Positions 37,097 to 60,579 of a stretch of DNA of 64,000 bases are shown here, piece by piece (the stretch's first letter is position 1; each line of letters starts with the position of its first letter). This stretch comes from Paragordius varius (Eukaryota; Animalia; Nematomorpha). The stretch spans positions 11,408,001-11,472,000 of the forward strand of contig OZ176053.1 of the NCBI GenBank assembly GCA_964247055.1, read 5' to 3'. The notes under the pieces are model-generated. The model was given only the letters and a program-made list of their open reading frames with translations, was not told where the DNA came from and ran no database searches. Position numbers and translations under genes: made by a program.

Positions 37097-37103
37097 CGTC
37101 CCT

Positions 37104-37149
<46 letters not shown>

Positions 37150-37170
37150 GACCGATTGCGCCACAGAGAC
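37097..37170 (-). tRNA. tRNA-Asn (anticodon GTT)
   Basis: The sequence GTCTCTGTGGCGCAATCGGTCAGCGCGTTCGGCTGTTAACCGAAAGGTTGGTGGTTCAAGCCCACCCAGGGACG folds as a canonical cloverleaf with A and B boxes. A T-run terminator follows. Confidence 0.98.
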
Positions 37171-37498
37171 CTTGGAAAAAGAAAATATAGTTATGTTTAT
37201 ATACCCAAGCTCAAAGGATTAAGCGCAACAAAATATTGGAATGTGGTATATATAAAACTTATAATTATAACCCTATTCGACCCCAGACGCAACAAGACGG
37301 CTGTCACTAAACCTCCATAGACTGGTGGAGAAAGGGCAACAAGCGACGCCTTTTGTGGACAGAAACAACGTGGATCTGCTACACCCTTTTCTTAATACAC
37401 ATTGATACCCTATTCTTGTGAGAAGACTAAATAATCAATGTTTTAACGATTCCCGTTATATAATTTTTAGAATTGCACATTTTTTTGATCGGTTCGCC

Positions 37499-40400
37499 AT
37501 GGATATCAGTTTAAGGCAAAGGTACACATTTGAACAGCTACAATTGAGTAATATTACAACCCTAGATGAGTTAGATTTTAAGGTATATTAATTTTAAATT
37601 TAGGTTCTTTCTTTCCAAAATCGTAAAATATTTGAGCGTCTTGAATTTTATCGTAATAATGAAAAGGATTTGAAACAAAAAATTGAACAACTTGAACAGA
37701 AGTGTAATTCAACAAACTCCATTCTTTGTTTGTTTAATCGATATTGGAATAGTTTGGATGATAACCTTAAATTAATACTTGACAAGTAATTTTTTATATG
37801 TTATAATAGAATCGCTATTGAGTTTACAGTAGAACGAGACAAATATCAATATGATACGGAGACGCAGAAACAACTGGAAAACATAGACATTCTTACTGAT
37901 TATGATTCTTTAATTTCAAAATTTGGTATATAATTTAATAATTTTTTAGTTTCTAAAAATGAAAATTCAATACAAAACATTAACGAAGAAGATTCTCAGC
38001 ATAGCGGAACTGAGGATGTGCTTGATGAAACTACGTAAGTCAATTTTGATCACTATTGTAATTAGATATCTTCGGTTAACACTTCATGACTTTTTCACTT
38101 TTTTGTCCGCTAAGACATATTGGGTAAGTTTTGTATACCAGAACTTTGTTTTGTAAATAAATTACTGTTTTAAAAGTTATTTTAGTTTAAATTTAATTAT
38201 AAAACATTTTTCTCGTGTAGATAAAAAAGATCATATTTTTTACAGTTTTGTGGCTTCTAAAGTCTAAAATTGCGACAGCTCCAAAACATGAATGAAAGAG
38301 GGGCTTATATAACATCATTTGATACGAATTTAAAGTTAATTCACATTAACCATATTATACATTTATTTGCCTGTTACAATAGCGTTTTAGGAAAAAAGGC
38401 GGCCAAAAAGTTTGATGATGATTTTTTGCAATTTCATTTATTTTTAAAATTTCTAGTATCATCCGCTTTAAAGGCTAAAGAATGCATATTTTAAAATTAC
38501 TGATACTTTAAATTCTTTTAAATATTTGAATTTTATAAAATACCCGAAAAGGTCATGGAGTGTTAAATAAAAGTGTCCTGAACCTTTGTTCATTCGCTTA
38601 AAGTATACTAATATATCATTTTTCTCTATAACCGTAGATTGTGAGCGTTTTCATAATTTCATAAGCATTTTGAAATGTAAAGCACTGGTGTTTTTTTATT
38701 ATAAATATCTCTTTTTAACTCATTTAGCACTATTTCATTTTTGCTAATAATAAAATATCAATATTTTATGATTGATCGACGTAATTTGATAATAATTGCT
38801 AATTTTAAACGATATTTGCTTTATACTCCAACATTAACTTTTTATGTTAGTTATTAAAAGCACACTGCGAAATTATATACCAATTACTGAATAGTTTTTA
38901 GTTATAAAATATTTTGCCCTAAAATAAATAAATTTATTATATAATTTTTATCTGCCAGGGATGAAAGGAAATATGGGAAATTGGCTAAGATACGAAAAAT
39001 GCAACAACTTGAAAAACGCATCAAACTCGATTCATCCTCGAATAATTCTACCATACCATTTCCCACAGAATTTAACATGAAATTTACAAAAGAACAAGGT
39101 AACCTTTACTTTTTTTTCTGGTTAAATTATATCAATTTGGGTCAAAAATGTCTGAAGATGTTAATCTATAATAGTATTGAATTTCTGTATTAATGAACAT
39201 TGAAGTAAATGATTGAAGTGATGTTTGAAATGGAAAATTTGTTTTATGAAGTTTTATCGAATTCCACATAGTACAAACTTTAGAGTTTTGGATTAAATAT
39301 TTTTTTTGCAATCAATTGGTCCAGTTTCATTGTTTTTTTTTGTTTTAATATTATTTTGTATTGTTTTTACAGATATTTTATTTTATATATAACGTGGATA
39401 ATTTGCATAAAGAAAGTAATTATATAAGCAAAATTTACCGCATGCTATTTGCTCCTAAAAAATAGATTAAATATTTTTTAAATTAAACATTGTTAACACT
39501 GGTTTTTTAAATGTTTTTAGAACCTGGTTGATTAGTAAGTTTTGAGAGAACAATTTCCCTTACTTTTATACTTTTATATTTCCAAATTTCTTTATCTTAC
39601 CCAATTTAATATTTATTGTTAACCGAAATATCTAGAAGCCATGTTACAAAATTATTTCGTTGAAGAATTATTCACCTGTGATTCCGGTATTTTGGATCAA
39701 AAGTTTGGAGATCGAATCGAATTTACGAAACGTACGTTGCTTAATGTGTTGAGACACATTGAAACGTTTTACATTATCAGGGACCATGTCATAACTAAAC
39801 AAAGACAACAAATGTTAAACAACACCAACAGTAATGGTTGCTATTTTTATATATAATTCTTTTAATCATTAATTATTAATATATAAATTGTAATATTTAT
39901 TCAAGAAATCCGTGATATATTTCCAGTTTATAGTGGCATGTTTCTAATTTTTAACTTTTCCAAAATGTTTAACCCCTAGAAAATTGTTTATTTTTGTCTA
40001 CATCGTTTGAAACGAATGGTAATAGTATTAGTCACAGCGAATTTTTTCATTTGAACATATTTATTTTCCTAATTTATTTTTAATCCTTCCCTCGATAACA
40101 TCATAACTTATTGTGCTTAACCACTTTTTAACAGTCCACGGGGTTAAATTTTATCATTTGATTGTAATTATTAAGTGTAACTGATTTTTTGACAATATCT
40201 GGGCGTAAAGGAAAAGAGTTAAAACATCTCCTCTCAAATTTTGGGTTTAAAGCAGCGGTATTTAACATAAATGGCCTTGTGGGCCGCATTTGAAATATAT
40301 ATGGGTGGGGTTTTTTATTGGATTTTAAGCATAAGACTGTAAAATGCAAACACACAATATAGCATTTTTTCTTTATTTCCTGCCAATTTGATATAGATTG

Positions 40401-43400
40401 ATTTTGGATAATGTTTAAGAATTTTTAATTTTATTAAGATTTTTCAACATATTTTTGCAAATTATGGATTTCCAAATTTTTAGCGGGTCGCACATAAGGT
40501 CTCAGAAAACCGCATGTGGCTTGAGTTAACCACCCCTGTGTTAGAGATTTACATCATGTAACTAATCATTTTCAGGTTAATATATATTTTTTTTGTTTGC
40601 TTCTGTGCAGTCTGCAAATGCTCGGCTCAAAACAATTTGGCTGCTTAATTTTTTAATTATTTTTAGTCTAGACATCTTTTATCTTCTCCTAATATATATC
40701 CTCGATTTTCTGTTATTGTATATGTTTCAAACGAATAAGCCTTAATTCTCCAAGTCTATTGTCGAATTATTATATTACTTGATACTTGAATTCCGTTTAG
40801 ATTTTAACTGAGTTCACCATGATCTTTGCATACATGTTATATCAGGCAAATTTTTACTTTTCACCTGTTTTTGTAGTAAAACAAATTTTAAAAAAAATCA
40901 TGCGATTAACATATTATCTGTTACAAAACTAACTAATCTAAAATGAAGAGTATAATCGCAGGAAAAAGCACTTTAATTAGTTAATAGTGGGCTTTAGGCG
41001 CGATACCTTCAGGACTTATATGGATATCAATAAATCTTTTAAACAAGCGTTGTTTTTTAGTCAATTGAATTTGCAATAATTATTTATAGATCAAACTAAC
41101 CTATGTCTTTTATAAAATTGAGATATTTATAAATTGATGGTTTTTGTCAAATACTTGATACTTGATGGTTTTTTGACTTCAAGTTAAGGTGTCCGTGAAC
41201 GGTCTTATTCCAAAGGTCCTTATCTAGACATTTGGTAATGTCGAGGTTTAGTATTTTTATGTCATTTTTAATGTTGTCGCAGGAATGTGTTGGGCGCCCT
41301 TTGCGGTTGTTTCCAAAGGGTTGTATGTGCTTAATGGTTTGGAGTGGCTGGTCGGTTTGTCTTTTAATGTCCAAGTATTTAAGCCTGCTTCTTTGTATAA
41401 ACTTTTCTACTGTGTCATTTTTGTGTTTAAGATGAATATTGTAGTCAGAACAGCAAGCTTTAATTATTTTGTTTTCCGTATTTATCATTTTGTCAAGATT
41501 TGTTTTATTTAGGGGCCATGTTTCGGTGGCGTAAGTAAAAGCTGGCCTGACTCCTGCTTTGTATATTAGCCATTTATTATTGTGAGATACATTTTTATTT
41601 TTAAGGACAAATTTTAGGGAGTTGACTTTACCCCGTGCTTGTTGGATTCGTTTCCGTATTGCTCCAGATATATGGCCCTAAGAGTCTATGACGTCTCCTA
41701 GGTATGTAAACTGGTCTACTTTTTCTATTGAGTTTTCGTCGATTGTCATATATGTCGATCGTGTTTGAGTTGTATTATTGTTTTTACAGTTGTCACATTT
41801 AAAGTTTATTTGTTCGTTGAGTTTGCCGGTGATTTTGAAGCATTTTTTGTGAACCCAGAATTTGCATTTGTTGCATTTTATTGAATTTGTTTTGACTTCT
41901 TTGTCGCAGATAGCGCATGAATATTTAGGGCGCTGCGTACGATCACCTGATATCATTATTTTTGTTTTATTAATATTTATTTTCAGCCCATGGTTCTCTA
42001 AACAGATTTTCCATGTTTTGAATTTGTTTGAGATGTTTTCCATTGAAGTATCTGTTAAAACGATATCATCCGCGAAGATTAACTCCCAGGGCGGTTGAGT
42101 AGATATGTTTTTTGTTATACAGTCTAATATTATAATAAATAGTAATGGACTAAGTACAGACCCTTGGTGTAGGCCAGTGTTTGTCTTGAAAGGTTCCGTG
42201 TCTCTTATTTGCGTGCGTACCATTGTAGTTGTATATTCATAAAGGAGTAATATTATTCTATTAAATATTCTTCGATGTAATTTTGTCTTAGGGCCCATTT
42301 GATTGTTGCCCTAGGGATATCAAAAGCTTTCTCCAGGTCTAGAAATATGTGGAATAGTTTTTGATTTTTTGAAAGGTATTTTTCCTGTAGTTGCCTGATT
42401 ATGAAGATGGCATCTGTAGTGCTGTGTTCTTTACGAAATGCAAACTGATTATTTGTTATTGTAATGGTTTGTCTAAGGCGGTTGTCAATGATGCTTTCAA
42501 ATATTTTGAAAGTGTGTTCTAAAAGTTTTAAGGGGCGGTATGAGGAGCAGACGAGACGATCCCCCTTATTTTTATATATAGGGATCGTTATACTTTTATT
42601 CCAGTCATGGGGAATTTCACGTTTGGTAAGAATTTCATTAAAAAAAGTTGTAAGGTAGGATGTTAAGCATGGTATTGGTTTAAGCAGATCGATTGATAGT
42701 TCGCTGGCACCTGACGACTTATTTGGCTTCATTTTTTGTATTGCTTTTAATACTTCATTTTCTGTGATTTCGTGGATGGGTCCGCTCGTGGGTGGTTTTA
42801 GCATTAGAGGGATTTTTAAATTGTTGGTTTGGTTCATTGATTCTTTCAAGCTTTCTTTCCATATCTTAATTACACTTTCTGGGTTAGAGGTTATTTCCTT
42901 CATATTGTTTTTTATACATTTGGTTTTAATGATGTCTTGTTTGTTTGAGTTTATATTCTTTATGTATTTAAAGATTTTTTTATTTTTAACCTGGTCCTCT
43001 AGTTTAGTGGCCAGTTTTAGGCAATTATCATATATAGTTTTTCTAATTTCTTTCTGCGCTTTGTGTTTTGCGATCAGATATGTTTGTCTGTTTTTATCAT
43101 TGCTATCCCTTTTCCATGCTTTGAAGGCGTCGTTTTTTTCTTTAGTAACCTCTTTTAATTCCTTTTTCCACCACCAATATTTCTTTTTTTTATTGTATGG
43201 TTTGCATCTCCCACAAGTATTATCAGCTGTTTTAACTATTGTTTTTAGGTTATCCCATCTTGAACCAATGGATTCATTGTTTTGCTGGAGCTTTTCGGAT
43301 GCCTGGTTGATGTATTTGTTCCTGATTGTTTGATTTTGTAATTTATTGTGGTTGATTTTGGCAGGTCTTTGGTATAAGGGTTTATTTTTTAGTTTTTTCA

Positions 43401-45622
43401 AGACTGCAATCACTATTTTGTGTTGAGTGAAGCTAGTTTGATGAGTTTTAATGTTTAATTATGGCCGTTTTATTTTAGGCAAAAGGATATAATCTATCAT
43501 GGTATATGAGTTTGCTGTTTGAAAAGTGCCAAGATTCTGGTTTTTTGTGAAATGGGTGTTGGCTATGATTTGTTGGTTTGCTTGGCAATATTCTAACATC
43601 TGTTCTCCCATCTTGTTAGCACTGCCATAGCCGTTTCCACCATGAACTTCCCTGAAATCGTGTTCATTATTACTAATGTGACTATTAAAGTCACCTCCTA
43701 AGAAGATAGATTCCTTGCCTGGTATTGTATTTGTTAGATCTTGGAGTTCCGTCCAAAAATGTTGTTTAATTTCGTCTTTTAAACCTGGTTGGGGCGCGTA
43801 TATCGATATTATATTTAGGAGTCATCGTGCACAACCTTAAGCTGTTTTATTCTTTCATTGTGTCTCGTTACTTGGATAACGTTTTCGCGAAGACAATTTT
43901 TAATCGCTATTGCTACACCAGCCTGACCATTTTCTTGTCCTTGATAATAAAGTGTGTAATTGTTCGTGGTAATTAAGTTGTCTCCTTTTAATCTGGTTCT
44001 TGTAAGCAGCAGATGTCGACATTCTTAGATTCGAGAAAATCAATTATCATGTGTAGTTTTCCATTTAAAGTACCGATGTTCCAGGTAGCAAATTTAAATG
44101 TTTTGAGATTATTCATAATTCAGGTGTCGTGTTTTTTATAATTGTTATATCAGTTTATTATTATAATTATTCGGTATTGGTTGTTATGATGAAATAAAAA
44201 GTATTAAATTAATTGGTAGGAGGATTTTGTAATTAAGATATAATGTTAATAGTAAAAATTAAATAAGATATAAATATATTATTGTTATGATAGTAGGTAG
44301 AAGTTATTAAAAATGTAATATCAATTATTATTGTCTTTTCGTTAGAGAGTAAGTAGTTTTTGAATAAGACGTGTTCATGGTGTATAGCTTGAGGCGAGGT
44401 TTTTACTTTTCACATGCCCTTGTGAAAAAACTCTTTACGGAGTAGATGTTGCAGAACATCCAAAACTGGCCTTTGCTGTTCGTTCACCAAAGGTGGTCAT
44501 CCGACCAACACCGCGGGGAGGTAGCAGTAGGGCTTTGTTGGTCGGTTTTTGTCAAATCTAACAATGTTAAATAGTACTAAATCAAATCAGTGTTATAACG
44601 GATATACGTATACTATTTTCTATATAAATCAATTTTAGAAGTTCAAGAAAATATGAATCCAGCTTTGGCCAACATGAGTTTCGAGAATATTGTGGAAAGT
44701 GTCCGCAATGAAAATTATCAACTTCGAAACATGTATAATGTGTTACAAAAAGTGTTTTACCAAGAAAATTTGCAAAGAAAATCCGTCAAAGTAAAATTAA
44801 AATTTCATTTTATTTAGTAGGTTTTGGGTTCATGATAATAGGATGTGAGATTGTCATATATAATTTTTTTTTAAAATAAAACTTTCTTTTTTAATTATTT
44901 TTTTTAGTTTGTTTCGCCATTGTGTTTGCAATTTATATTATGGTAATTTTCTATAGTTTCTTGTACATTGTTTCCATATTGCTTTTTAATATGATTTTTT
45001 TTGAATGCAAGTTTTTTTTTAAAAAATTTTCTCTCTTTGACACAAAAAGTTGTTAATAAATAAAAAAACCGTTGCCCGATGATAAAATATGCATTTGAAT
45101 AAAAATGGTTGAAGTTTAAAAATTTTCCTTGATATATAATTATCGTTCTTTATTAATATTTATATGAAAAAGGAATAGTAAAACTTTATTTATATACATA
45201 TATATATATATTGTTGTTTAGGACCAATTGAAACTTTCTCTCAATGCTAATGAAGAGTTACTCAACCGTGTTCAAGATTTGGAATATGAGTTAGAAAAGC
45301 GAAAAGCAAACGAAATCAAACTGAATGCCGAATTACTAAAATTGTCTGATAACTTTAACAAAGTTAAAAGGGTATTAATAGATAAATATTGTCGTATCCA
45401 TTTATTTTACTCTTATTAATAAATAATCTTAAATTTTTGGACGCAATTTTTTAACCTTATATAAAAGATTTTAATTTATAATAACTTACATTATATATAT
45501 ATTTATGTATATTAAATAGAAAAATACCCTTCTTTATTTATCGATTGTCCGAATAAGTTTTTGTTTCTACATTTTTTGTAATTTATATACTTGAATATAT
45601 ACATATATATATATATATATAC

Positions 45623-45663
<41 letters not shown>

Positions 45664-48600
45664 ATCAATGGATTATTGTCGTAATTGACATTTTATATAA
45701 ACCAATATGTATTTATAAATTAAGTAGGCTAGGAATTTTCTTTAAGACCACATTTTCCTAAAGAATTTCATTTAAATTATACTTCCCAATATTATAGATT
45801 TTATGTAAAATAATTGAATTATTTTTTTATACATATGCAACACACAAAGGAAAACGGCGAAAATATTATGAAAATTACTGCACTCGAATCCGCTCTAACA
45901 CTAGCTAATAATAATAGCAACCTTAATGCCAATACCATTGCCATTTCTAACAACCAAAATGGCAATCCAAATAATAACTTCCCGGCAAACTTTGGGATGA
46001 TTTCCTCCTCAAATAACAACATAATTGGCCACCAAAATAATGGAACAAATTTGTCAGCTGTTTTGGATTCTAGCGCTCTCGCTGCGGCTTACGTCCCAAT
46101 CGAACAGTTTAAAACGGTATGTATAATAGTAAATTAGAAAAGTATAGTTGTATATATAGTTAATTATTTTTTTTGGTTCATTATAACTTTGTGGGTTATA
46201 TATATTAAATGATGGATTCTCATTCAACATATTTATCTTTTAATGAGAAATAATCGATTTTTTCACATTTTAAGAGTTTTAAATAAAAAAATATTGTTTT
46301 TTTGTTGCCTATCATTTTTTCTTGAGTGACCATTTTCAGCATATTTTTAATATAAAATTAATGTATTAAGATTTTTATATACAGTTATAAATATTTGTCT
46401 ATTAACGGTCTATTTTTTAATTTTATAATTGAGCCTTAACATCATGTTTAGTGCTGTAAGATTTATGTATTGTAAAAACAAATTAAAAAAATATAAATCT
46501 ATATTGAAAAAAAACCCCTCAAATTTATACACAATATCCGTATTATATATACAGTTGGAATATGATTTACAACAAGAACGTATCATTTCATCCAATCGTT
46601 TAACCGATCTCGAGCGATTGAATGAACGTTTATGCCAAGCTCAAACTAAACAACACTACTTACAGGTGTTTCGAGATCGATTTGATGGTTATGTTTTGCA
46701 ACAAACACCGGATCAAAATGTGAATAGCTCATTTTGTAACAACGAGGAAGGAATTAATAACACCAATAAAAGTGATGGTATAATTGTTAAAAATGAATGC
46801 GGTACTACCAGTATGCAAACTAATATCACAGATGAACAAACCCAAGATTCATTAACATCCTTTGGAATAAATCAAGGTACGTTTTATCGAAGCTAAGAGT
46901 TTTTTTGTTGTCTTTTGTCAAATTGGGGATTTATTTGTTTTTCAGTTACATTATTAAAATTGTTAGCTTATTACCATAAAATGTATACCATTTTCCGCTA
47001 AAATAAATAAATACCTTTATTAATAGTCATATATTAAAAAATAAAAGTTAACTTTTATTTTAAAAAATATCTTACAAAAATTATGTTAAAATCTTGGTTT
47101 TAAATTGTTTTTGTCGAATGGCTTCACAATAGTAAAGTGCCTTATGCAATTAATTTTATTTATAAAACCCATTTCGAAAAACACATAATTATATTTTAAA
47201 ATAATTGTTTATACAGATGCGATAGGTTATGAAGATACGCGGGATTCTACAGCCTCTTACAAAGGTACATTACATATATTTTTTAAAATTAACTATTTAA
47301 TTAGATTATATTTGAAATAAAACAGCGGGTTATATTTTTGGTATAATGAGAAATTTTTTATAAAATAATTATAAGTAAGCGCGTGTAACCATATATTTAT
47401 ATTGTCTTTTACTAAAAGCCCAAACTATCCCCGTATTTTTACCTAATATACTTAATCTTTGTTCTATTTCCATCAACTGCCTGCGACTTGGAAGTTTTTG
47501 TTTCAATTTTTAAAACGTAAATTTATGGTTTTTGTTAATTATATTACTATTCTCTGTGATCTTAGGCTCTATACATTAATTTCATAATGTTATTATCGTA
47601 TACTAAGTTATATTTTTGTATGAACACAGTGAGAGAATAGATCAAATTTTTTACTAGTTAATATGAAGTTTAGTATTAAACTATATGAAAAAAAAAACAA
47701 TTTAGATAACATTAATGACTCAAAATATATTTTATTTATTATATATAGATAAAATTGGAGGAATTGTGCCAAAATCAAATTTTTATTTTGATGAGCAAGC
47801 GTTTGTTAAGGATTCTCATGATTACAAACTATTACAAAGCCAATTTGCCATCATTTTTAATGAAAACAAACAGGTATTATTGATTTTTAAATGTCTATTT
47901 ATATATGTGACACCAACAATTTATAGTGGTTTTCATTTCTAATATTATTAATCTTGTGGAGATAGGGTCGGTCATTTACATTACGCTCCTTTACAAAGAA
48001 ATATAAAATTGGATTAAGTTTTGAAATTCCCAGAACCCTAACGGGCTTTTAAAATTATTACCTAGTAAAATCAAAATTGGTGAATATGTTTTTTATCTTG
48101 CATCAAAATATTGATACTAATCCATGTCATTAATTGGGTTTAAAATATAATCTATCCTTTGATGTTATTTTTATTAAAAGAAAAAGTTTATTGTTATAAA
48201 TTTAATTATTATTTTTACTTGATCAGAATCCGAAAAATGTATAAAAAATTTATGATTGCTCTTTAGTATTTTAACTTGTTAACAGTTCTCTATAAATTTT
48301 TTTTACCATCAATACAATACTCTAAATGAAAGTCTATTATTGGTTTTAGCTTGGTATTTATACCAAACATAATACACTCAAATAATCAATAATCAAAAGA
48401 AATAATTGCCCATTTTATACAATGTATATCCGATTGTTTTTTACCCCTATATTATTAGTAACGAGAAATGATTTATCTTACATAATTTATTGAAAATATT
48501 CTAGTTTGGAACAAAAAACAATTTTATTTTTTACAATAATAACTTATACAATCGAAATTTAAATGAACCAATGTGGGCTCACTCTCGTACAATACATGAA

Positions 48601-51600
48601 CCGACATAAATGAAAAAAAAATAATTTTGAAAAATTGCTAATAAGTCTAATTAAATAATTTATTTTTCTTGAATATAAGACATTAATAGAAAAACAATCC
48701 AAACACACGGGCTTATTTAAAATTACGGTTTACAAGCGCGGTCTAAGGGAATGGACCTAAATTGTTAATTTTTGCCTCTATATAATTGTCTAAAGGTTTA
48801 AACAAGCTTCGATTTTTACTAATTATTTATAATAACGAATTCTATGTTTAATTCAATGCTTTTTAATAAATTACAGGTTTATTTGTTTCAATAACATATT
48901 TTTATACATCAATGTTGTTTGTCTACAAATGATTAGCTTAAAAGTCAAGCCAATGAGTTGAGAAAAATTTTGGGGAGTGTAAAAACCATACATCTCACTC
49001 AAATGGAACAAATGGCTAAAGTGCTTGAAGAAAATTGTGGCGAGTTTAAGAAGGAAGCCCTAAGCCTTCAAGAGAATTGGTTAAAGGTAGGTACTAAAAC
49101 TTAAAAATTAAACTTTTTTTACGCAAATTAAATAAGAAAAAGTTTTCAAAACTCTCTCTTTTTTCCCATTGAGTAAATATTTAAATTATAAAGATAACAA
49201 AACATAAAAAGCAGTAGAGAGATCAATATTACCTTTATGTATGAAAACAAATTTTGAAACCGTATTTTATCTCTTTAAAAATAATTTATTTTTTTGGAAG
49301 ACGAAATAAGGAATATACATCGTAATCGTAACACACAGGATTGATTATGTATACTAATCTTATAAATTTTACAGAATTATAAAGATAAACATAATAATCT
49401 TTTACTTATATTTGTTTTGTCTTTTAAATTTTAGTTTTATTGTATTATATTTTAGACTAAAAAAGAATTGGACACATTACGCGTTGAATATGATCAATAT
49501 ATGGCAACTCGGGAACAAAGTATGGCTATAAGTCAAGAAACTAAAATAACGATTGCCAACTTACATGAACACAATCGACAATTGAAGGTTATATTACAAT
49601 GATATTTAATAAAAAATATGGAAATTTATTTAAAACGTGTCATAATAAAATTTGCGTACGGTTTCGGACATTTTATTTATTCTATGACACGTTTTAAATA
49701 AATTTGCATATTTTTTATACTATTCACGTGTTGAAAATTTATATTCTTCAATGATATTGATTATTGAAATAATTAAACTTTTAAATTTAAACTTAATTTT
49801 TTTTATCGTAAAGCAAATATTACTTAAAATTACCTTTTAATTCGAAAAACATATTCTTTTTAAATAAAAATTTATTATTTATGCATATAAAACGTATTTT
49901 AGGGTTGAAATCATTTATACACAAAGAAAAATTAATATTTTTATAAAAGTCATCATATATATTACTCAAATTTTTTGCCATACATAGCGTGAAATTATGC
50001 GATACAAGAAACGATTTTATTCAGGTAGCGGTCCACCACCATCCCATGGTAAAATAACTTTTTATTACTTTCAATAAATTTGATAAAAATTTATATATAT
50101 TTTTCAAACTAAGATTATTAATTTGTTCTGGATTTTCTAGTTTTGATATAAGAGTCGGTTTGTGAAACTAATATTATATACAGTTTTAAATCCATTTTTT
50201 GTGTTTTTAAAAAAGCCTTTTCGATTAAATTTTTATTTTTACTATTAAAATAAATATTTTTAAACATTTATACTATTTTAAAATTGCATTTAACATATAA
50301 TTTGTTAAATATCATTTTTTTTCACCTTGTTTAAAGGTCATTCTAGCAATGTTTTATCACCAACGAAACAGCTGTCTTCTCACCCACTGCAATCCGGTTC
50401 AACAAATCAAAAAAGTGAAAATATTTTGCCTGCCTCTTTATCAGCAAATAACAGTAAAGATACTACTAGCGATCAAAATAATGCAAGGTATGGAAGTAAA
50501 TTAATTGCTAAAATCTAAAATAATTATTAAAGGGTTGAGTTTTTAACCATTGGACACATATAATAACCAATTGGACTGCTTATTAATGGAGTTATTTATG
50601 TATGGTTACAACCAGTAAATAAATCAATACCAAAATTGCAAATATAGGTGATTTAACTTAAAAATATATACTCTAAATCCATTTGATTACTCGTCTAAAT
50701 AGTGTTATTGATATACTATTTACAAACAAAAACCTAATGATATAATTTAAGTCTACACCCTAATTTTATTTCCGAATTCTAATGGTGTTTTTATACTAAC
50801 AAGGAAGTAATCCTTTTTCCTATCACTTCTCTCCAAAGGCATTAGGCTCATGTGTCTTCCATTTTTATATTAAACAGCTAGATCGTTTTCCACAATAGAA
50901 AGCCATTTTTCCTGGGATTTATATTAAAATTTGTAGAATTGTATATGCGATATAGCCAACTTTCATATGGACAATGCAATTCGTACACGAATATTCAATA
51001 AGTAATATCACAATGTACGGCTCAAATTTAGGCATTGTAGCTAAAGAGAGTCTTTGAAAAAAAATTTTTAAACATGTTTTATCTTAGTGAATTCGGTCAA
51101 AGTCATTTCCTCTGTTGCAAAAATTTGTCGTATGGCGGTAGTGTATACAATAGACTTGAATTTGAATGAGAAGTATTTACTATTTGTTAATATATATGTT
51201 GATGAACCTTGATCTAAGGGTTATTTAAAGTGAAAATGGACTTAAAAGAAAAGGGAGAGAGAAATTTGTTGTACCCCCAGAATTAAGTGAAAGTAAATCG
51301 GAATATTTGGCGCTGGTTACCACTTGAGCTTTGTACTTGACATATGATACCATTATTGATATCCATTCTTCGACACGCCTGTAAATTAGGATTCAAAGAA
51401 CCAGTTTTCGAACCACAGAATCGGATGCTTTTTAAAGATCAACCAAGGCATAAGATAAGGGGCTGTTTTGGAGGTGAGCTGGAGTTGTCCCATGTGTCAT
51501 TCCTTTGTTGGGCAAGAAAACGCATTGCATTTCATTTATATTTTTTCTTAAAACGCTTCATATCCTGCTTAAAGAGTTTTATTGTACGCTGGGTATTTGG

Positions 51601-54233
51601 GTTGAGTCGCTCGCCTTTGCCTTTGCATAGGGGTTTTATTTAACCATTGTTCCATTTAGTAGGAATTATTTTTCAATATTTTTAATGATAATATTACATT
51701 CAGTATCGGTATAATTTTGAATTAAAACCGTTTATCATTTCTATCGTCGATTTAAAGGATACAGCGGCGTTATTCTTTTTACATGTAACGAATAGCTCCT
51801 CTGTTATCTATTCCCACAACTTAGTATTAGCGTTGAGTGGCATAGTTATAATTGTGATCATATTTTGTGTTAGTACTTGTGCCAAACTTTTTTTTATGAC
51901 GATAGGATCGTGCTGATTGCATTGTTGTGATAAAATAGAAGGGTTTCCGACAGATTTTATAGATTGTGATATATTGAATGGAACGGAACATTTTTCTGTA
52001 AATATGTGTCATAGGATAATGTCTGGTAATTAATGCTTTTTGAAATGGTGGTGGGACGTTGAAAAATTAGAATTAGTTAGATTTAAGAATTAAAAAGCCA
52101 AAAATGGAAGAATGCAAATTAGAATTCATTGAAAAAATAATATCGTAAGGTGATAAGGGTATCAAGCCAAAAGTATACTATATAGAAGGTTAATTGCACA
52201 ATCAATCAAAATCTATATATATAAATAAATCAAAGATACATCCTCTAAACTATTAAAACAAGCTATTAGAGTACCTAACAATTTTGTTAGCTAAAGTCCT
52301 ACACCACCGCCATAAAACAGGTTTGGTGAAAGCATTATGACAAGATATTCATATATTTTATATTATTATATCAAGCAATTACATAAAATTTTCAATTTGC
52401 TTTATATTATGAGTGAGCTTTATTAATGCAATCATATTTAACTAGTTAGACTCAATCTTAACTATAACTTAATTTTATTTAACTTATGTAATTTATCCGG
52501 TTTTTTGCATATATAAAACAATTTTTATGTTAGAACATATAAAACAGAAACTAGTGCGAATACACGTAATACTAAAAGTTCATCTGAGACTTTACAATCT
52601 ACAACAACCAATGATGCCCTACAAAGTATCAAATACATTTAATTTAAATTTTTATATCAAAATCGCATAATTATATTTTTATTTAATATATAACAGAAAT
52701 TTATTATATACAGCACTTTACAAAATATTTATCTTTAAGTTATATATGATTTTTTGACTAGATAAGGGTGAAACACCCCTTACGACGATTGGTCAATCGC
52801 AAAAGCATTATCCACCCTCCTATTCATCGTCAACGAATGAAATCGCTCATTTACGGGAAGAATTGAAAAGAGCTCAAAATGGTATTTTTTTAAAGCAATG
52901 TTTTTTATATCCTAAGGTATAATTATTTTGGTTTAAAAGCAATAATTTTTTTTAAAAAAAATTATATTAAAATTATATATATTTCTTTATATCATTAAAA
53001 ATACCAAATATTTGTGGTTTGGATATTATCAAAATTTTTAATGGGTATTATCGAAATAGATATTTTTTGAGTAGAACTACCATGTTAAAACCTTAATTTT
53101 TAGATATAAGTAAGTAGATTAAAAACACATAAAAAAGTTTAAACATCCTTTTACACCTTTTTTTTTTATTTTTATATGATTGTCTTTGCGTTAAGGTAAT
53201 CGAGAATTAAAGTTTTTGCTTGATTCCTACAAAAATGCACCCAAAGAAACGCGCGAAAAAGCCGAAATTATAGCTTCTGAAAAACGGATCCAAAATGATT
53301 ATGCTATCTTGGAGGAACGTTTTAAAAGATATGAGGCGGCGTATTTGCACAGCAGTAATGTTGCGTCCACAATGACCATAAAATCTGGTAAGATGCACTT
53401 TTAAAATGTTGGTATTTTTTAAAATTTATAAACTTGCACAGTATTTAAAAATCATTCTATTTCCCTTTTTTTGTATTATTGAAAACAGCTCTGTAATTAT
53501 AATTTTTAGAATAATTAAACTGGTTTGTTGCTTTAGCCACTAGTAATATATATATATATATATTAAAATAAATATTGAATTGAAAGATGTAAAATTCAAT
53601 GGGTGTGTTTAATATTTAAAACGAAATAACATTTTTTATGCAATCGCAAAACTAATTGAAAGTAATTTATTTTTTTAACTAAAATATCCTTATTAAGACT
53701 TATAAATAATTTTCAATATATATATTTTTTTTTAAATTTGCATGTGAATCACTTTTTTCCATTTTTACTTGTAATATCCAAATGCTAATTGATTTTTTTG
53801 GTTGTATGTGTTTTAATTTTTATTTTTACCCCTAAGGGATATATATATAGTTTTAAGGAATAACCAACTTGATCAATTCGTTTTAAAATAAGAAAATAAT
53901 AATAAATTTTATTAATGGATAATTAATTTCAAACATTCAATTTATTTATAAAGTTAGTTATCCCATATTACTAACTCTGCTAAAATATATATCATTCATA
54001 TCAGGTAATGTAAATCCAACCACATCAACATTGACAACTATATCTTCAAACCCTCAAACCCCACCCCCCATAAACTTTCCCAAAAAACTTGCACAAGCAG
54101 AAGAAAAAATTGCATCTATGCAAAAGAAATTGTTTGATACCAAACAGGTATCATACAGAAAAAAAATTAAAATTGAATTATAAAGACAAAATACGAAAGT
54201 TAAAAAACAAATATTTTTTCTATATAAAGATAA

Positions 54234-54270
<37 letters not shown>

Positions 54271-57200
54271 ATCTACCATTCAAATTTACCTTGAAAATTA
54301 ATTATGTGTTTTCGGGCTAATATAACTCATTATTAATATGAAATATATCTTTATGGCGTTTTTTATTTTTTCAGTATTATTTTTAAAATATAAGTAATAT
54401 TTAATTTGTAAAAACATATAATTTATTTCAGTGTGAAACTAAATTGTTCAAGGGTGAATTTGAATGTGTAAATGGTGTATATTGTTTCAATTGATATAAT
54501 TTATCGTTTTGGGCTGCCAATTAGGGAATAGAGATGTTAATTGATAATACAACCTTTATTTTTCCCAATTTTATTATTATTATATAATTACAGTTCAAAA
54601 GATGGTTTTCTTTATTAAAAATTTACCTTTTTTTAAATTTTGTTTCTATAATTTTTTTATAATTTTATAAAATTAAATATTTTTTAACAACAACACCCCT
54701 ATAGGAAGAAGAGGCATTACTCAAAGAATTAGAGGTGACTGGTCAAGCTTTTGAAGATATGCAAGAACAAAATATAAGGTAAATAAGTAAATATATTTTT
54801 TTATTTGATAAGCTAAATGGATGTATATTTGTATACAAACCTTGTTTATATGCCTGCTAATATTATCATTGGAAGTTTTTTTTCAGAAATCTTTTTAATT
54901 ATAATATTCAAAGATGACATTCATAAGTTAGTTTGTCTTTGGCCGTGTAAAAAATCTTGCTAGACCACTTAATACATTTATTCACCGTCATAATCAATAT
55001 TTTAATGCTAATATATGATGTTTAATTTTAGAAACAAAATATAAATTGCCTATTTAAATTGATTTAAAACTATAAATAGTATAAAATAGACCCTCCCGCT
55101 TCATACTTACCTACTTAGAATTAACAATCTTAAAACTAAATCTGATAATCATGCTTATGGATTTTATAAGGTTCTATTTTTTAAATTAAAATCTTAATGT
55201 CAAGACTATTAAACTGGATTCAAAGCTCTTATAACACACAATGCATAAATCAAATTTTCCTTAATTTTAATCATTTTTTAATATCAAAAACATGAATAAG
55301 CCTCAAATTATTTCCAATTAGGGTTATTAGGAAAGCGGGGGTCCAGTGTATTAACGATTAACCTAAAAATAAATAACATTTTATATTATTAAAAATTTTT
55401 ATGCTATTAATTTTATCACCTGATATATTTTTGATGAAATTTTTGACTGGGTATTTGAAAACACGGTCAATGCATTTAAAACTGGTCAAAGTATACATTA
55501 ATTCCCATAATCTCAGGTTTAAAATAGATTTTAATTGCAATATCTATATATTATTTTTACCAATGTGTTGCAATCAATTATTTTCATATTACACACCCCT
55601 GTTATCTCTCAGATTGTTACAACAATTACGGGAAAAGGATGATGCCAATTTCAAGCTTATGACGGAACGCATCAAAGCCAACCAAATGACCAAAATTATG
55701 AAGGAGGAAAAAGATGCCCAGTTGGAAAGGGAAGAGGTCTTACGCACATCAAACACCAAACTCTCTGAAGCTATCATCATGTTGAAAGAACGGGAAAAAT
55801 TATTGCAGGTTGCTTATAATAATAATTATTGGTAATTATATATTTTTTACCAAGGAATTCGTAATTCGTAATTTAGCTTTGACGGAAAATTTTTATTTTA
55901 TATACCAAATCTAGGCTCTGTTTGTGAAGGACGGCCCTGAAAATATATTAAAAGCAAACTTTTATTTTAATAAAATTATTCAGTAACTATTAATCCGAAT
56001 ATGAAAGCAAAATAGACTTTATTTAATCATACCGCATAAAAATGTTGTTTTAAATTGAAATAAATATGTTTATTATTTGAAAAACGTCTTTTTACACAAA
56101 ATATTAAATTTGTACGAAATTAATGGAAAAATTTATTTATGCATATATTTAACCTGATATAAATTTGATTGTTTTTTAACAAAACATGTTTTATAATAAT
56201 TTCGCGCTCAAACACATAAAGTTCCATAATATTGCCAACGAGAACGATTGAATTCTCGTGAAATAAAATTTATTTAATTGAACTATATCCAAAATCTTCG
56301 ATAGATGGCAGTAATTATTTTTTTAATGGATGAACTAAAGTACAAAAGAAAACAAAATATAATTAAATAATATATATATTCTATAACTATTTTAAAACAT
56401 TCAATCTCTCCACATTTTGATTTATATACTTATTTAATTTATTTTTGGTAGACGGCTTTGCAAAACAGCGAACACGAATCACGTCTCCGTGTATCAGCTT
56501 GTGATGCTTATAAACTCAAAGCTATTGATTCAGCTAGCTTGGCTCTTTCACTCAAATCCAAAACTGAGGCATTAACCATCAGTATAGATGAACAAATGAC
56601 ATTAGCCACTCAAAGATTAACCGAACTGGAACGTGAACGCTTTAAAGCGGAAAGATTGAAGGAAGAACTCATCAAATTGAAAGATAAATATCGTTGGCAA
56701 CAAAAACAGGTATGATGCTTTAAAAATATTGATGTAATGTGAATATAATTATTGATTACATGTCGGTCCTTTGGTTAAGTAAATTGAAAGAGGTGAATGT
56801 TGATGCAAATAAGCAATTATAAATTTTTTTTGTTATTTTGCATGAATATGGGCTTGCTTACATATATTCTATGGGCTAATTAAAAGAGCATTTAAATATG
56901 ATTGCTATTTATTAGTGTCAGATTGTAACCTTTTTATCTCATTTTTAATGGTGTAATTTATGATTGATGTATTGTATATCATGGTGTAATATAAATTTTT
57001 TATATGATAAAATATATTTTATTTTATATGCACTAGCCTCTATGGTATTATGTTAGAAAAATTGTAAATAGGTTTAGGTGGAAATAGTTAAATAATTACG
57101 ACAATAAAATAGTTTAATTTTGACAATAGTAAATTTTATCCATACTATAAAAATCAACAAATATATATTTGCAGAAAATGTGGCTTAATTTTATTTTTAT

Positions 57201-60200
57201 ATGAACCAATTCATAGTATCACCAATCACTCCAACAAAGTAATTTGGAAAACGCTAATTCAAACTCCAACGCGGCCTTTGGGGGTGGAGATGGAGATAAT
57301 TCAAGCAGTCAGCACCAGTTAACATCTGAAATTATGGTTTTAACTGAAGAAATAAGGACATACAAAGAGCTCATGACTTGCCCCTCATGTAAATCTAATC
57401 GTAAAGATGCATTACTCACCAAATGTTACCATGTGTTTTGCTTCAAATGTTTGAAAACGAGGTTTTTTTTATTTATTACCAAAGTTTAAGTGATACACGG
57501 ACTGATAAAATTATGATAATTGGTTTTTAAAATTGGTCATATTAGCATAAACTGAAGAAATTGCATGAGGATTTAATTTAATAAAATTCAAATAATTAAA
57601 GATTATAAAAAATACACGGTCTGGTTCTAAATTTGATGTTGTTACTTTCATACGCATGGAATGAAATATTTAGTAATGTTTCATCTGTGTAATTATTAAA
57701 AACAATTAAATTAGAATCTTAATCTATATAAAAGCTAACTTAGATATGTGTATATATATATAATATATATATAATTTACCATTTTCAAGGTGTCCTTGAA
57801 CATCAGGTTGGTTTTGGTCCTTTAACTTTTTTGTTTCTACTTTTATCAATCAAATCGTGTCATTCATCTATTTTATCATTTTTAACCAAACCTTTAAATC
57901 GATTTCAACTTTTAATCATACAGAAACCGTATACCTTAATTTCTTTCTTTTAAAATATTTTTATAATAATAAGATTTTAGTACGTAAATTAAAAATTTAC
58001 AAGTTTTCTGTGTTATTTATTATATTTTTTTGTTAAAAACATTTATAATGTAATAGTTTTGAAATTGGAAATTAGTTTAAAAAAAGGGTTTAAATAAAAA
58101 AATTTATTTTTAAATGAAATGATATATAAAAAAAATTTATATAAAAAAATAATAAAATAAAAAACACATGCAAAAATTATGGGTAAATCCAAATTTTAAG
58201 GACCAACTTGAAGTGCAAATGATATATAATTTTTTTGGTTCAATAATATTTAGTTTAAAGCCTTAAGCTTTGGTAAAGATTAAAACCAGTAAGCTTAAAG
58301 GTTAACACATGTAACCCATAAGAAGGAAAAGTCAGTCTTGTTATTCTTTTTTTCAGATTTGAGTTGTTTTATCGTCTATTAAACATTTTAAAGAAAATGT
58401 ATTATATTAAGGTTTAAACGCCATATAAGAGAAAAAAAATGAAAAAAACAATGTGCCAAACCGCCGGGCTGTTTACCTGTATTTTGCCTAAATTTTATAT
58501 TAAAAGTAACAACAAGTGTAATGTTCATAACTTGTAAAGATTTCTCAACATTTTTTTTTCATCATGCCGTTTCATCACTCCACACAGCTTGATTAGGCTA
58601 TTTATTATAACATTTTATATTTTGCCGGACCAAAGAGTGTTATACTTGACCTTTTAAACAAATAAACCTTTATTCTTATGATTGTGACACCGGTCCTAGT
58701 AAATCAATATTAAAATTCATTTTTACATTAACCCATTAGATTGGGTAAGATAAATTGGAGAAATCGATAAATATTTCCTAAAACATATAATATGATGATA
58801 AAGATCGGGGGGCTCATTAAAAAATTGGACGGACCTCACCAATATATTATGTTTCTGACCATTCCCGAACAAAAGTAACCATTTTTCGCACTGATTATAT
58901 TATCTTTCCAACGTTACGGTCGTTGATTGCTAAACATAATCATTCGTATCATACGTATATTTCAGTAGGCCTCACAAAATCTATTTTTTAATAATCGAAG
59001 ATCATTTCATCAAATTTCTGGTCAAAGAAATTTTATCTTCCAGGATGTTAATTTAAGTTTTAGTGACTGCTTACAATGGGTTTTCAAAATATTCTGATGA
59101 TAAATATTATATATACAAAAAATACCCTGAATAAATATATATAATCTTTAAAAAAATGTATCAATAACGCTTTTTGTTTTGGGCCTTGCGAGTGATATAA
59201 AAAAGTCTTACGATTATTTTGGCAACAAGGTAAATTAATACTAAAATATATCATTAACCATATATAAAAAGCAAACCAATCTTTTATAAAATTATATATG
59301 TGTACTCCGAGAGCCTATTTTTGTACCCGCTGAAATGGGCAAGTTTTACTAAACGCAAAAAAGCCAATATTGCGCCAAAAAAATTTAATATGTGCTAAAT
59401 TTCAAAAAAGGTTTTTGGTATTTTTCTTTAATATAAAAATTTTTGGTAAATCGAGTTATATCGTATTTAGGAGCATGATGGAAACTTTATAAAAACACTT
59501 TTTCTATATAATTTGATGATGCTGAACTCCTCTATAACCCCAAAATTTTGATTTAAGGATCTGTTCATCTTTTATATTAATTTAAAATTAATATTTTTCA
59601 ATATTCACCCAAATTTAAAAGTAAACGAACCTTTACATTAAAATTTTGAGGTAATAGAGATGTTTAGCATCATCGAATTACATAGAAAATGTTTATGTAA
59701 TAAAAAAACGTTTTTTTTACCGTTTTTATCAGGCCAATAGTATGCGGTACCCATTTTTTTTAAAAATTTTTAGTCAATATCTTAATATAGATTATTTAAA
59801 ATTTTATCGCGTAATCTCTTCATTCTAGCGGTTATCAAAAATGAAAAACTTATTTTTTATAAGCTAAAAAATTTGCTTTGCCCATATTCAAAATTAAAAT
59901 TTCTTTTATATTGTTTTTACGTGTAATATAAGATATATTTTGGTGATATTTGTTGAATTAAAAGCATTTAACTGACAATGTAAAAATTCATTTTCTGATA
60001 TGGCGCATTTTTCACAAAAGTGTAATATTCTTTTATTACTTGTATGGGCCGAAACCAAAAGCACCATGATAATCTTGACACATTTTTCCAGAATGTATCC
60101 ATTTCATCAGGTTATTTTTATACTCCCCGATTTCGGACGCAGGGTTATTTAGGATTCTGTTTAACATTAGGTTTAGGCCAGTATAGACTTATGGCACTTT

Positions 60201-60579
60201 TTTAAATTTGATGCACTAAATACAATCTATCCTTCTTTTAATATTTTTAGGTATAACATGATCATACGAAATTTTCTTTAAGTCTTTATGATATTCCAAA
60301 AATCGACAGTTGTAATAGCAATAGTCGATTTAGGTCTATTTAGTAAGTATCACGTTAGTTTGTACGCGTGTGATGGATATAAACAGTTGCATTAGCTTGG
60401 TTTCTTTAGTTAAATATACCACCTAAGAATTTTTTTACGCTTTTTAAAAAAATTTGGTTTTTAATTTACCCGATTTATTTATTTTAATATATTTCAGATA
60501 CGATACCAGGCGAAGAAAATGTCCAGATTGTGCTGCACCATTTGGTGCCAATGATTTTCATCGATTATTTTTATATTAA
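37499..60579 (+). CDS. Bre1: E3 ubiquitin-protein ligase Bre1 (RNF20/RNF40 family), >20 exons
   Basis: The first exons are 37499-37582, 37604-37785, 37810-37925 and 37950-38034, and the last is 60498-60579. Conserved blocks are [73 protein letters not shown] and [20 protein letters not shown]. The C3HC4 RING reads [43 protein letters not shown]. Confidence 0.96.
37583..37603 (+). other. 21-nt GT-AG micro-intron (Bre1 coding intron 1)
   Basis: The intron is gtatattaattttaaatttag and contains three in-frame stops. Removing it gives DELDFK|VLSFQNRK. Confidence 0.92.
37786..37809 (+). other. 24-nt GT-AG micro-intron (Bre1 coding intron 2)
   Basis: The intron is gtaattttttatatgttataatag. Read-through gives AAG TAA, and removal opens the next 116 nt in frame. 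Confidence 0.85.
37926..37949 (+). other. 24-nt GT-AG micro-intron (Bre1 coding intron 3)
   Basis: The intron is gtatataatttaataattttttag. Read-through gives GGT ATA TAA. Removal keeps the frame to a GTAAGT donor that is phase-compatible with the next exon at 38959. Confidence 0.85.
40253..40538. mobile_element. hAT-type MITE in a Bre1 intron
   Basis: It runs CAGCGGT..CATAAATGGCCTTGTGGGCCGCATTT ... GCGGGTCGCACATAA..AACCACCCCTG and belongs to the same family as 80-371. Confidence 0.65.
41153..44543 (-). mobile_element. Full-length RTE-clade non-LTR retrotransposon (APE + RT, frameshifted), antisense in a Bre1 intron
   Basis: A perfect 14-bp TSD, GGTTTTTGTCAAAT, lies at 41139-41152 and 44544-44557. 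The ORF starts at ATG 44116 with [23 protein letters not shown] and IDY. The RT carries [34 protein letters not shown] and FTYLG. The 3' tail is (ATCAAGT)2. Confidence 0.93.
44474..44543 (-). ncRNA. HDV-like self-cleaving ribozyme at the 5' end of the RTE element
   Basis: Minus-strand fold: P1 GACCAAC/GTTGGTC, P2 TGCT/AGCA, P3 ACC/GGT, L3 TCCCCGC, P1.1 CC/GG, P4 CACC-TTT-GGTG, and J4/2 CGAA with the putative catalytic C at 44482. Confidence 0.8.
45595..45658. repeat. Compound (TA)n/(CA) microsatellite
   Basis: Read directly from the sequence. Shorter (TA)n runs also occur near 12391, 32181, 53546 and 54236. Confidence 0.9.
49609..49718. repeat. 110-nt inverted repeat with 36-bp arms and one mismatch
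   Basis: ATAAAAAATATGGAAATTTATTTAAAACGTGTCATA pairs with TATGACACGTTTTAAATAAATTTGCATATTTTTTAT. Confidence 0.85.
50650..52400 (-). mobile_element. Decayed LINE (RT relic) in a Bre1 intron
   Basis: Broken frames read LCLVDL.KA.DSV.RKL, GVQQ..LSPFL and YLG-like segments. The boundaries are approximate. Confidence 0.55.
54267..54478. mobile_element. Short TACCAT-terminus MITE directly after a (TA)n run
   Basis: Its interior matches 10440-10600 and it ends TTTGAATGTGTAAATGGTGTA. Confidence 0.65.
57777..58224. mobile_element. Deleted copy of the 33193-33811 MITE
   Basis: It runs TACCATTTTCAAGGTGTCCTTGAACA ... AAGGACCAACTTGAAGTGCAAATGATA with a collinear interior. Confidence 0.75.
58600..59080 (-). 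mobile_element. Possible LTR-retrotransposon integrase relic
   Basis: Broken frames give HPGR and [12 protein letters not shown], which resembles PYHPQSNG. The support is weak. Confidence 0.25.

Follow-up and report, generated by a model that had tools for sequence, protein, structure and literature searches.

Three GT..AG segments of 21–24 nt at the start of a hairworm Bre1 gene are probable spliceosomal introns

The window analysed here, a stretch of 64,000 nucleotides (nt) from the genome of the hairworm Paragordius varius (assembly GCA_964247055.1, contig OZ176053.1, positions 11,408,001 to 11,472,000 of the forward strand), carries the gene of Bre1, a histone-ubiquitin ligase of the RNF20/RNF40 type (E3), and the N-terminal coding region of this gene is interrupted by three GT..AG segments of 21, 24 and 24 nt. 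Judging by comparison with Bre1 sequences of other animals, we consider all three to be spliced spliceosomal introns with a probability of about 85%. An earlier note, made from the letters of the same stretch, had already proposed such introns; its coordinates and GT..AG ends were found to be exact, and its intron reading is now backed by an intronless orthologue in another hairworm, Gordionus sp. m RMFG-2023, by independent guide proteins, by the frame in which exon 5 is entered, and by the presence of the segments in the DNA of two individuals.

A custom protein-to-genome spliced aligner, which admits GT..AG introns of at least 15 nt in all three phases, was guided by the 1132-residue Bre1 of the horsehair worm Gordionus (P0001; annotated as unnamed or BRE1B-like) and by eight further proteins (nematode, sea cucumber, coral, tunicate, flatworm, midge, and two unnamed). 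With the candidate introns termed micro-introns 1–3, the N-terminal part of the gene is laid out as follows.

37499..37582, plus strand: Bre1 exon 1, 84 nt, coding for M1–K28 and ending in ELDFK; 11/28 residues identical to residues 1–28 of Gordionus P0001.
37583..37603, plus strand: putative micro-intron 1, 21 nt, GTATATTAATTTTAAATTTAG; phase 0, GTATAT..TTTAG, with three in-frame stops; placed with 9/9 guide proteins.
37604..37785, plus strand: Bre1 exon 2, 182 nt, VLSFQNRK...NRYWN...LILDK; matches human BRE1B and BRE1A.
37786..37809, plus strand: putative micro-intron 2, 24 nt, GTAATTTTTTATATGTTATAATAG; phase 2, GTAATT..AATAG, with an in-frame TAA; placed exactly with five guides.
37810..37925, plus strand: Bre1 exon 3, 116 nt, ending in LISKF; gapless against Gordionus VAIELNVQKEK...
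37926..37949, plus strand: putative micro-intron 3, 24 nt, GTATATAATTTAATAATTTTTTAG; phase 1, GTATAT..TTTTAG, with an in-frame TAA; placed with the Gordionus and sea-cucumber guides.
37950..38034, plus strand: Bre1 exon 4, 85 nt, an acidic and Ser-rich linker, followed by a GTAAGT donor.

All three segments begin with GTA, extended to GTA(A/T), and end with TAG, and their G+C content is 8–12% compared with 27–33% in the four flanking exons. As the earlier note had claimed, their lengths are multiples of three (3n) and each of them would bring a stop into the reading frame if retained, namely TAA, TAA and TAG in the first, and one TAA each in the second and third. The uniform 3n lengths may be due to chance, as only three introns are concerned. 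When the three segments were taken out, an open N-terminus of 155 codons was obtained, which starts with the ATG at 37499 and extends up to the GTAAGT donor at 38035. At each of the three sites, 202–351 different 3n deletions would open the frame, and exactly one of them has GT..AG ends; at the third site, this sole option among 346 is 37926–37949.

The Bre1 of Gordionus is encoded by one uninterrupted open reading frame (ORF) of 3399 nt without introns (L001, 3001–6399; OX940786.2), and it therefore serves as a natural complementary DNA for the gene in the window. In a tblastn search, the match between the N-terminus of P0001 and the window stayed in one frame and was broken by three gaps, which fell on the three segments. 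After removal of the segments, the window protein aligned with P0001 without a gap over 126 residues, junctions 1 (K|V) and 2 (K|I versus R|V) included. Consistently, the ELDxK|VLxFQNxK block, which according to the earlier note is rejoined gaplessly by removing the first segment, was so rejoined against nine orthologues. The P0001-guided spliced alignment placed introns 1–3 at exactly 37583–37603, 37786–37809 and 37926–37949, in phases 0, 2 and 1, respectively. Further, micro-intron 1 was recovered with 8/8 of the other guides (9/9 when P0001 is counted), and the donor at 37786 with seven of the eight, in four cases joined to the acceptor at 37809 (five exact placements with P0001). Micro-intron 3 was recovered by one of these guides, the sea-cucumber protein, and its donor by two more. 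Some guides skipped exons 3–4, because this stretch is an insert common only to the two hairworm proteins.

The frame downstream of the third segment was also informative. The phase is 1 at the end of exon 3 and 2 at the entry to the conserved exon 5 (Gordionus KYGKIAKIRKMQ). To bridge this difference, the 85-nt exon 4 is needed, and hence the 24 nt with a TAA that separate it from exon 3 have to be removed; exon 5 connects in frame to exon 3 solely via exon 4 with segment 3 taken out, and it can be reached in frame only when none of the three segments is retained.

Several observations weigh against reading all three segments as introns. GT..AG ends are not rare in this sequence, as 0.36–0.62 frame-opening 3n deletions with such ends are expected per site by chance; GT..AG borders alone are therefore weak evidence, and the evidential weight lies in the coincidence, at each site, of the sole GT..AG option with the one that the orthologue alignments call for. 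At junction 3, the alignment with Gordionus has a one-residue gap within a poorly conserved, low-complexity stretch, and exon 4 is identical at only 4/28 residues. In five RNA-labelled runs of the same species, the share of sampled locus words found was 0.00 in each, and the run search gave only DNA-like matches; the reads examined across the locus consisted of unspliced genomic contigs only. Finally, the four sequences at hand, the three Bre1 segments and one similar candidate in a Derlin-2 gene of the window, are too few to identify branch points.

The weak alignment and low complexity of junction 3, and the omission of exons 3–4 by several guides as expected for a hairworm-specific insert, would fit a somewhat different model, in which micro-introns 1 and 2 are as described and the third interruption is dealt with through different splice sites or a different exon 4. 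This model is very unlikely, given that the Gordionus insert is collinear with the window, that exon 3 joined straight to exon 5 gives a broken frame (phases 1 and 2), that 37926–37949 is the only GT..AG 3n solution, and that a phase-1 intron at most one alignment column away is present in the orthologues of the nematode and the midge.

The segments were also found in other DNA data. Runs X1, X3, X5 and X4 provided genomic DNA contigs, all unspliced. A contig of X1 matched 37496–37839 with zero differences, contigs of X3 and X5, which come from a second sample, spanned micro-introns 1 and 3 ungapped and with substitutions of their own, and a contig of X4, a differently labelled organism, spanned micro-intron 2 ungapped. 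The earlier note had named an assembly artefact as refuting its claim; being present in independent DNA assemblies, the segments are not such artefacts, and they are fixed in at least two individuals.

Comparison of the two individuals further revealed how variation is distributed over the locus. In the 115 nt 5′ of the ATG (37385–37498), the second individual differed from the window by 9 substitutions and 2 indels (∼8%), far above the divergence of the exons, which suggests a high within-species diversity in non-coding DNA. For the 266 nt of exons 1–2, no difference was listed, and the X3 difference count allows at most one more. Micro-intron 1 of the second individual carried one change, T>A at intron position 4, with GTA kept; the three changes listed in exon 3 were all at third codon positions, two of them synonymous and one D>E. 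This substitution pattern is that of a translated frame under constraint. It argues against the segments never being removed, be it that the 5′ end is in decay and translation of a shorter Bre1 begins at an ATG further downstream, or that the whole locus is a pseudogene. Such a scenario would agree with the poor conservation of exon 4 and with the fact that no RNA with the removal was seen, but it is very unlikely, as the four small exons are similar to Gordionus Bre1 in one frame, the stops are confined to the three GT..AG segments with the other ∼980 codons intact, and no other part of Bre1 is as well conserved among animals as the N-terminal block.

Short, AT-rich segments within coding sequence could also be removed from somatic DNA, like the internal eliminated sequences of ciliates, and programmed DNA elimination exists in some nematodes. 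Here, elimination in place of RNA splicing is highly improbable: the segments are bordered by GT..AG, extended to GTA, and not by TA..TA, they were present in every DNA contig seen (two samples and another labelled organism), and we know of no case of intragenic 20-nt elimination in animals. An assembly or sequencing artefact, or a variant code reading TAA/TAG as amino acids, would have AT-richness as its only argument and is negligible, as the X1 contig is identical, the contigs of the other individual carry the segments with their own single-nucleotide polymorphisms, no exon contains an in-frame TAA/TAG, and the stop falls at the same residue as in Gordionus.

On the preferred reading that the segments are introns, GT-AG (U2-type) introns shrunk to 21, 24 and 24 nt would be cut from the Bre1 pre-mRNA to give the normal N-terminal region. 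Recognition would take place across the intron and rely on minimal signals: the intron would open with GTA(W)(W)T, close with a T-run and AG, and have between them a short run of A residues as its probable branch site. All three micro-introns and the Derlin-2 candidate have A-runs 4–13 nt from the 3′ end, although in ∼90% A+T sequence these are not diagnostic. The 3′ end TTTAG is found in two of the three Bre1 micro-introns and in the Derlin-2 micro-intron, with no separate polypyrimidine tract. Such a signal set is similar to that of nematode short introns and of the ultra-short ones in myxobolids and dicyemids. The same spliceosome would also take out the 136–4826-nt introns further 3′ in Bre1, in line with the suggestion of the earlier note that one splicing system would handle both classes in this gene. 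Since each segment combines a 3n length with a stop, unspliced transcripts would be read only up to a premature stop and would yield no aberrant full-length protein; nonsense-mediated decay of unspliced Bre1 transcripts is plausible. The candidate intron in Derlin-2 lies at 8712–8734 on the plus strand (23 nt, GTAAATATTTCTTTAAATTTTAG), ∼39 codons into an open frame, and is of the same build (A-run, T-run, AG) as the Bre1 micro-introns; in Bre1 as in Derlin-2, no intron lies further 5′ than the tiny ones.

The positions of the N-terminal Bre1 introns were derived for the nematode Soboliphyme (L002), the sea cucumber Apostichopus (L003) and the midge Contarinia (L004), and the exon borders of vertebrate Bre1 were taken from genomic ORF fragments. 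A phase-0 intron directly before E-E-L-D-x-K is common to the nematode, the sea cucumber and vertebrates, and a second phase-0 intron directly after N-R-Y-W-N-Q is common to the nematode and vertebrates. At both ancient sites, the Bre1 of the window has uninterrupted coding sequence (37562–37582 and 37722–37785). The first of these sites precedes D23 of the model protein and the second follows S75; micro-intron 1 is displaced downstream from the first by six codons (18 nt), and micro-intron 2 from the second by 32 nt. Both displaced sites are in gaplessly aligning regions, indicating that micro-introns 1 and 2 are not ancestral introns merely shrunk in place. Loss of the ancient introns and gain of new ones nearby would be the simplest reading, and no route is apparent for protein-neutral intron sliding by 18 or 32 nt. 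Micro-introns 1 and 2 might then be lineage-specific insertions, and the hairworm lineage might have, or once have had, a process creating or relocating introns of ∼20–25 nt in 5′ coding parts; we regard this as a tentative proposal, and if it is true, the tiny-intron class arose partly from intron gain and not from deletion bias alone. Micro-intron 3 (phase 1) is at most one alignment column from a phase-1 intron common to the nematode (51 nt) and the midge (63 nt), and is probably ancestral.

Two longer introns of the gene, 39099–39638 and 54148–54704, have the same position and phase as sea-cucumber introns, implying that the Bre1 of the window is the old intron-bearing form and that the intronless Gordionus gene is derived. 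The Gordionus gene has either lost all its introns or been replaced by a retrocopy. In tblastx, the flanks of the Gordionus locus had no match in the window, and an orthologue and a relocated retrocopy are not separable by synteny.

Two possible sources of the micro-introns were tried and rejected. As repeat or introner copies they would recur, but each is unique in the window, where one look-alike with three mismatches (27791–27814) has no coding context. For tandem duplication of an AG|GT exon piece, AG|GT at both borders was present only in micro-intron 1, and no clear similarity between exon and intron was seen. A window-wide scan of ORFs for removable 15–40-nt segments found GT..AG ones at 11 loci versus 7–12 for control dinucleotide pairs (plus strand), with no enrichment; such an ORF-only scan is unable to detect the micro-intron class, for which homology is needed.

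The identity of the gene was assessed exon by exon and as a whole. Exon 2 matched residues 51–109 of human BRE1B and BRE1A (E values of 4e-7 and 4e-6, respectively), a region known to bind Rad6 in the Bre1 proteins of yeast and human. Searched with HMMER against the full set of 1.84 billion representative proteins, exon 2 gave 119 matches, with P0001 at the top (57% identity; query residues 1–60 on P0001 29–88); the matches include full-length orthologues of eight other animal lineages. Exon 2 corresponds to the conserved N-terminal coiled-coil block of Bre1, VLQFQNKKL...NRYWNQLDE. The whole of P0001 (residues 1–1132) matched the window collinearly in tblastn from 37499 to 60576, and the spliced Bre1 model has 1137 residues, 47% of them identical to P0001. 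A C3HC4 RING finger was detected in the C-terminal exons (Pfam zf-C3HC4, E value of 1.7e-6, 28.2 bits with a cut-off of 21); when single Bre1 exons were run against Pfam, no exon scored except the RING exon, and exon 1, which at 28 residues is too short, had no match among PDB sequences. Searches with exon 2, with the whole of P0001 and with its residues 1–130 found no other hairworm Bre1 and no transcript-derived protein of the species of the window. By these comparisons, the window carries a complete Bre1 gene, and its host is a fairly distant relative of Gordionus.

Downstream of exon 4, the gene continues as follows.

38035..38958, plus strand: Bre1 intron 4, 924 nt, by spliced alignment.
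38959..60576, plus strand: remaining Bre1, ∼21 further exons and ∼20 introns of 136–4826 nt.

The introns of 0.1–5 kilobases (kb) that the earlier note had described in the same gene thus correspond to 136–4826 nt by spliced alignment. In total, Bre1 has ∼23 introns across 23 kb, three of them tiny. The RING finger is encoded in two pieces (57290–57461 and 60498–60576), and the stop codon is at the same residue as in Gordionus. Exon borders in the middle of the gene are partly uncertain owing to a weakly conserved stretch, and a 51-nt ‘intron’ at 57239–57289 is probably an aligner artefact, as the frame is open there. Exons 3–5 (37810–39098, model residues ∼89–200) form an insert of ∼110 residues that is common to Gordionus and absent in seven other animal orthologues; it looks like a hairworm-specific addition between two conserved coiled-coil blocks.

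The G+C content of the window is 24–34% throughout, and its features are of animal type, including a reverse transcriptase of the long interspersed nuclear element (LINE) type in an intron. The ORFs of this LINE-type retrotransposon lie at 41147–44116 on the minus strand, within the 4826-nt Bre1 intron 6. Very high-copy repeats are located at 38076–38400, in Bre1 intron 4, and at 37300–37450; the contig depth at the repeats summed up to 141,657, compared with ∼700 in flanking unique DNA, and many loose ends were found at 38076, 38108 and 38149. A tRNA-Asn gene (GTT) lies at 37097–37170 on the minus strand, ∼330 nt 5′ of the Bre1 start codon.

Introns of this size are familiar from ciliates, with ∼25 nt in Paramecium and 15–16 nt in Stentor. 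There, as Jaillon and colleagues reportedly described in 2008, introns of 3n length contain a stop in frame and thereby truncate the protein when retained. The hairworm micro-introns have the same size and the same 3n-and-stop logic, three of them being too few for a 3n-with-stop rule; unlike ciliates, which have reassigned TAA/TAG and possess almost only tiny introns, the Bre1 of the window uses the standard code and has long introns. In nematodes, the sister phylum of hairworms, C. elegans introns have a mode of ∼47 nt and a 3′ UUUUCAG that is bound by U2AF, with no branch-point consensus. The T-run plus AG (TTTAG) at hairworm 3′ ends suggests the same type of 3′ recognition. Introns of 51–69 nt are present in the same part of Bre1 in the nematode Soboliphyme. 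The hairworm micro-introns are half as long as the short introns of nematodes, and two of the three differ in position from those of the nematode orthologue.

Among animals, introns of <30 base pairs (bp) are known only in myxobolid myxozoans and dicyemids, which have compact genomes, according to a September 2026 study that predicts further lineages with ultra-short introns (Mol Biol Evol 2026; PMC13644364). In this study, the median intron of myxobolids (Henneguya, Thelohanellus, Myxobolus) is given as 22–27 bp, and the sequence logos of ultra-short animal introns show GTa, AG and 2–3 A residues upstream; the main text contains no occurrence of ‘Nematomorpha’, and its 51 genomes are listed in the supplement. 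The earlier note had rightly counted dicyemids among the groups with tiny introns and had left out the myxobolids, which by this account also have introns of <30 nt. At 21–24 nt, the Bre1 micro-introns are within the published myxobolid range and are not a size record.

The resemblance to the myxobolids extends to the length (21–24 nt versus a range of 20–27 nt), the GTA...AG signals with A residues upstream of AG, the adjacency of short introns within one gene, the parasitic life of the animal, and the validation by conserved exon junctions. Differing from the present case, the short class makes up the bulk of myxobolid introns, their genomes are compact (∼75 Mb), and long-read RNA supports them. 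In the Bre1 of the window, the only gene measured here, just the first three introns are tiny, and the ∼20 others are of 136–4826 nt with transposons inside. For Dicyema japonicum, a mean intron of 38 bp and a genome of 67.5 Mb are given in two papers (PMC6736024, PMC13644364). This animal is likewise a parasite with GT-AG introns of <30 nt and reduced splice motifs; in contrast to its reduced genome with uniformly short introns, two size classes occur in one hairworm gene. Introns are never mentioned in the Gordionus genome preprint or in a comparative hairworm preprint.

If the splicing is true, the hairworm would be a third, independent animal lineage with introns of <30 nt, and an animal spliceosome would handle both extremes on one transcript, 21–24 nt beside kilobase, transposon-filled introns. 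What is new here is the lineage, the coexistence of such introns with long transposon-bearing ones in one gene of a repeat-rich genome, the use of an intronless orthologue as control, and the finding that two of the three introns are not at ancestral positions. Those displaced positions bear on whether tiny introns originate by shrinkage or by gain. Gaps this small are read as deletions, or barred from gene models, by common pipelines; the default minimum intron is 21 nt in STAR and ∼39 nt in AUGUSTUS. STAR and BRAKER were used in the Gordionus genome paper. Where genes contain introns of this size, their predicted structures would be wrong, and part of the reported losses of universal genes, and of the low BUSCO scores, in hairworm genomes could stem from this.

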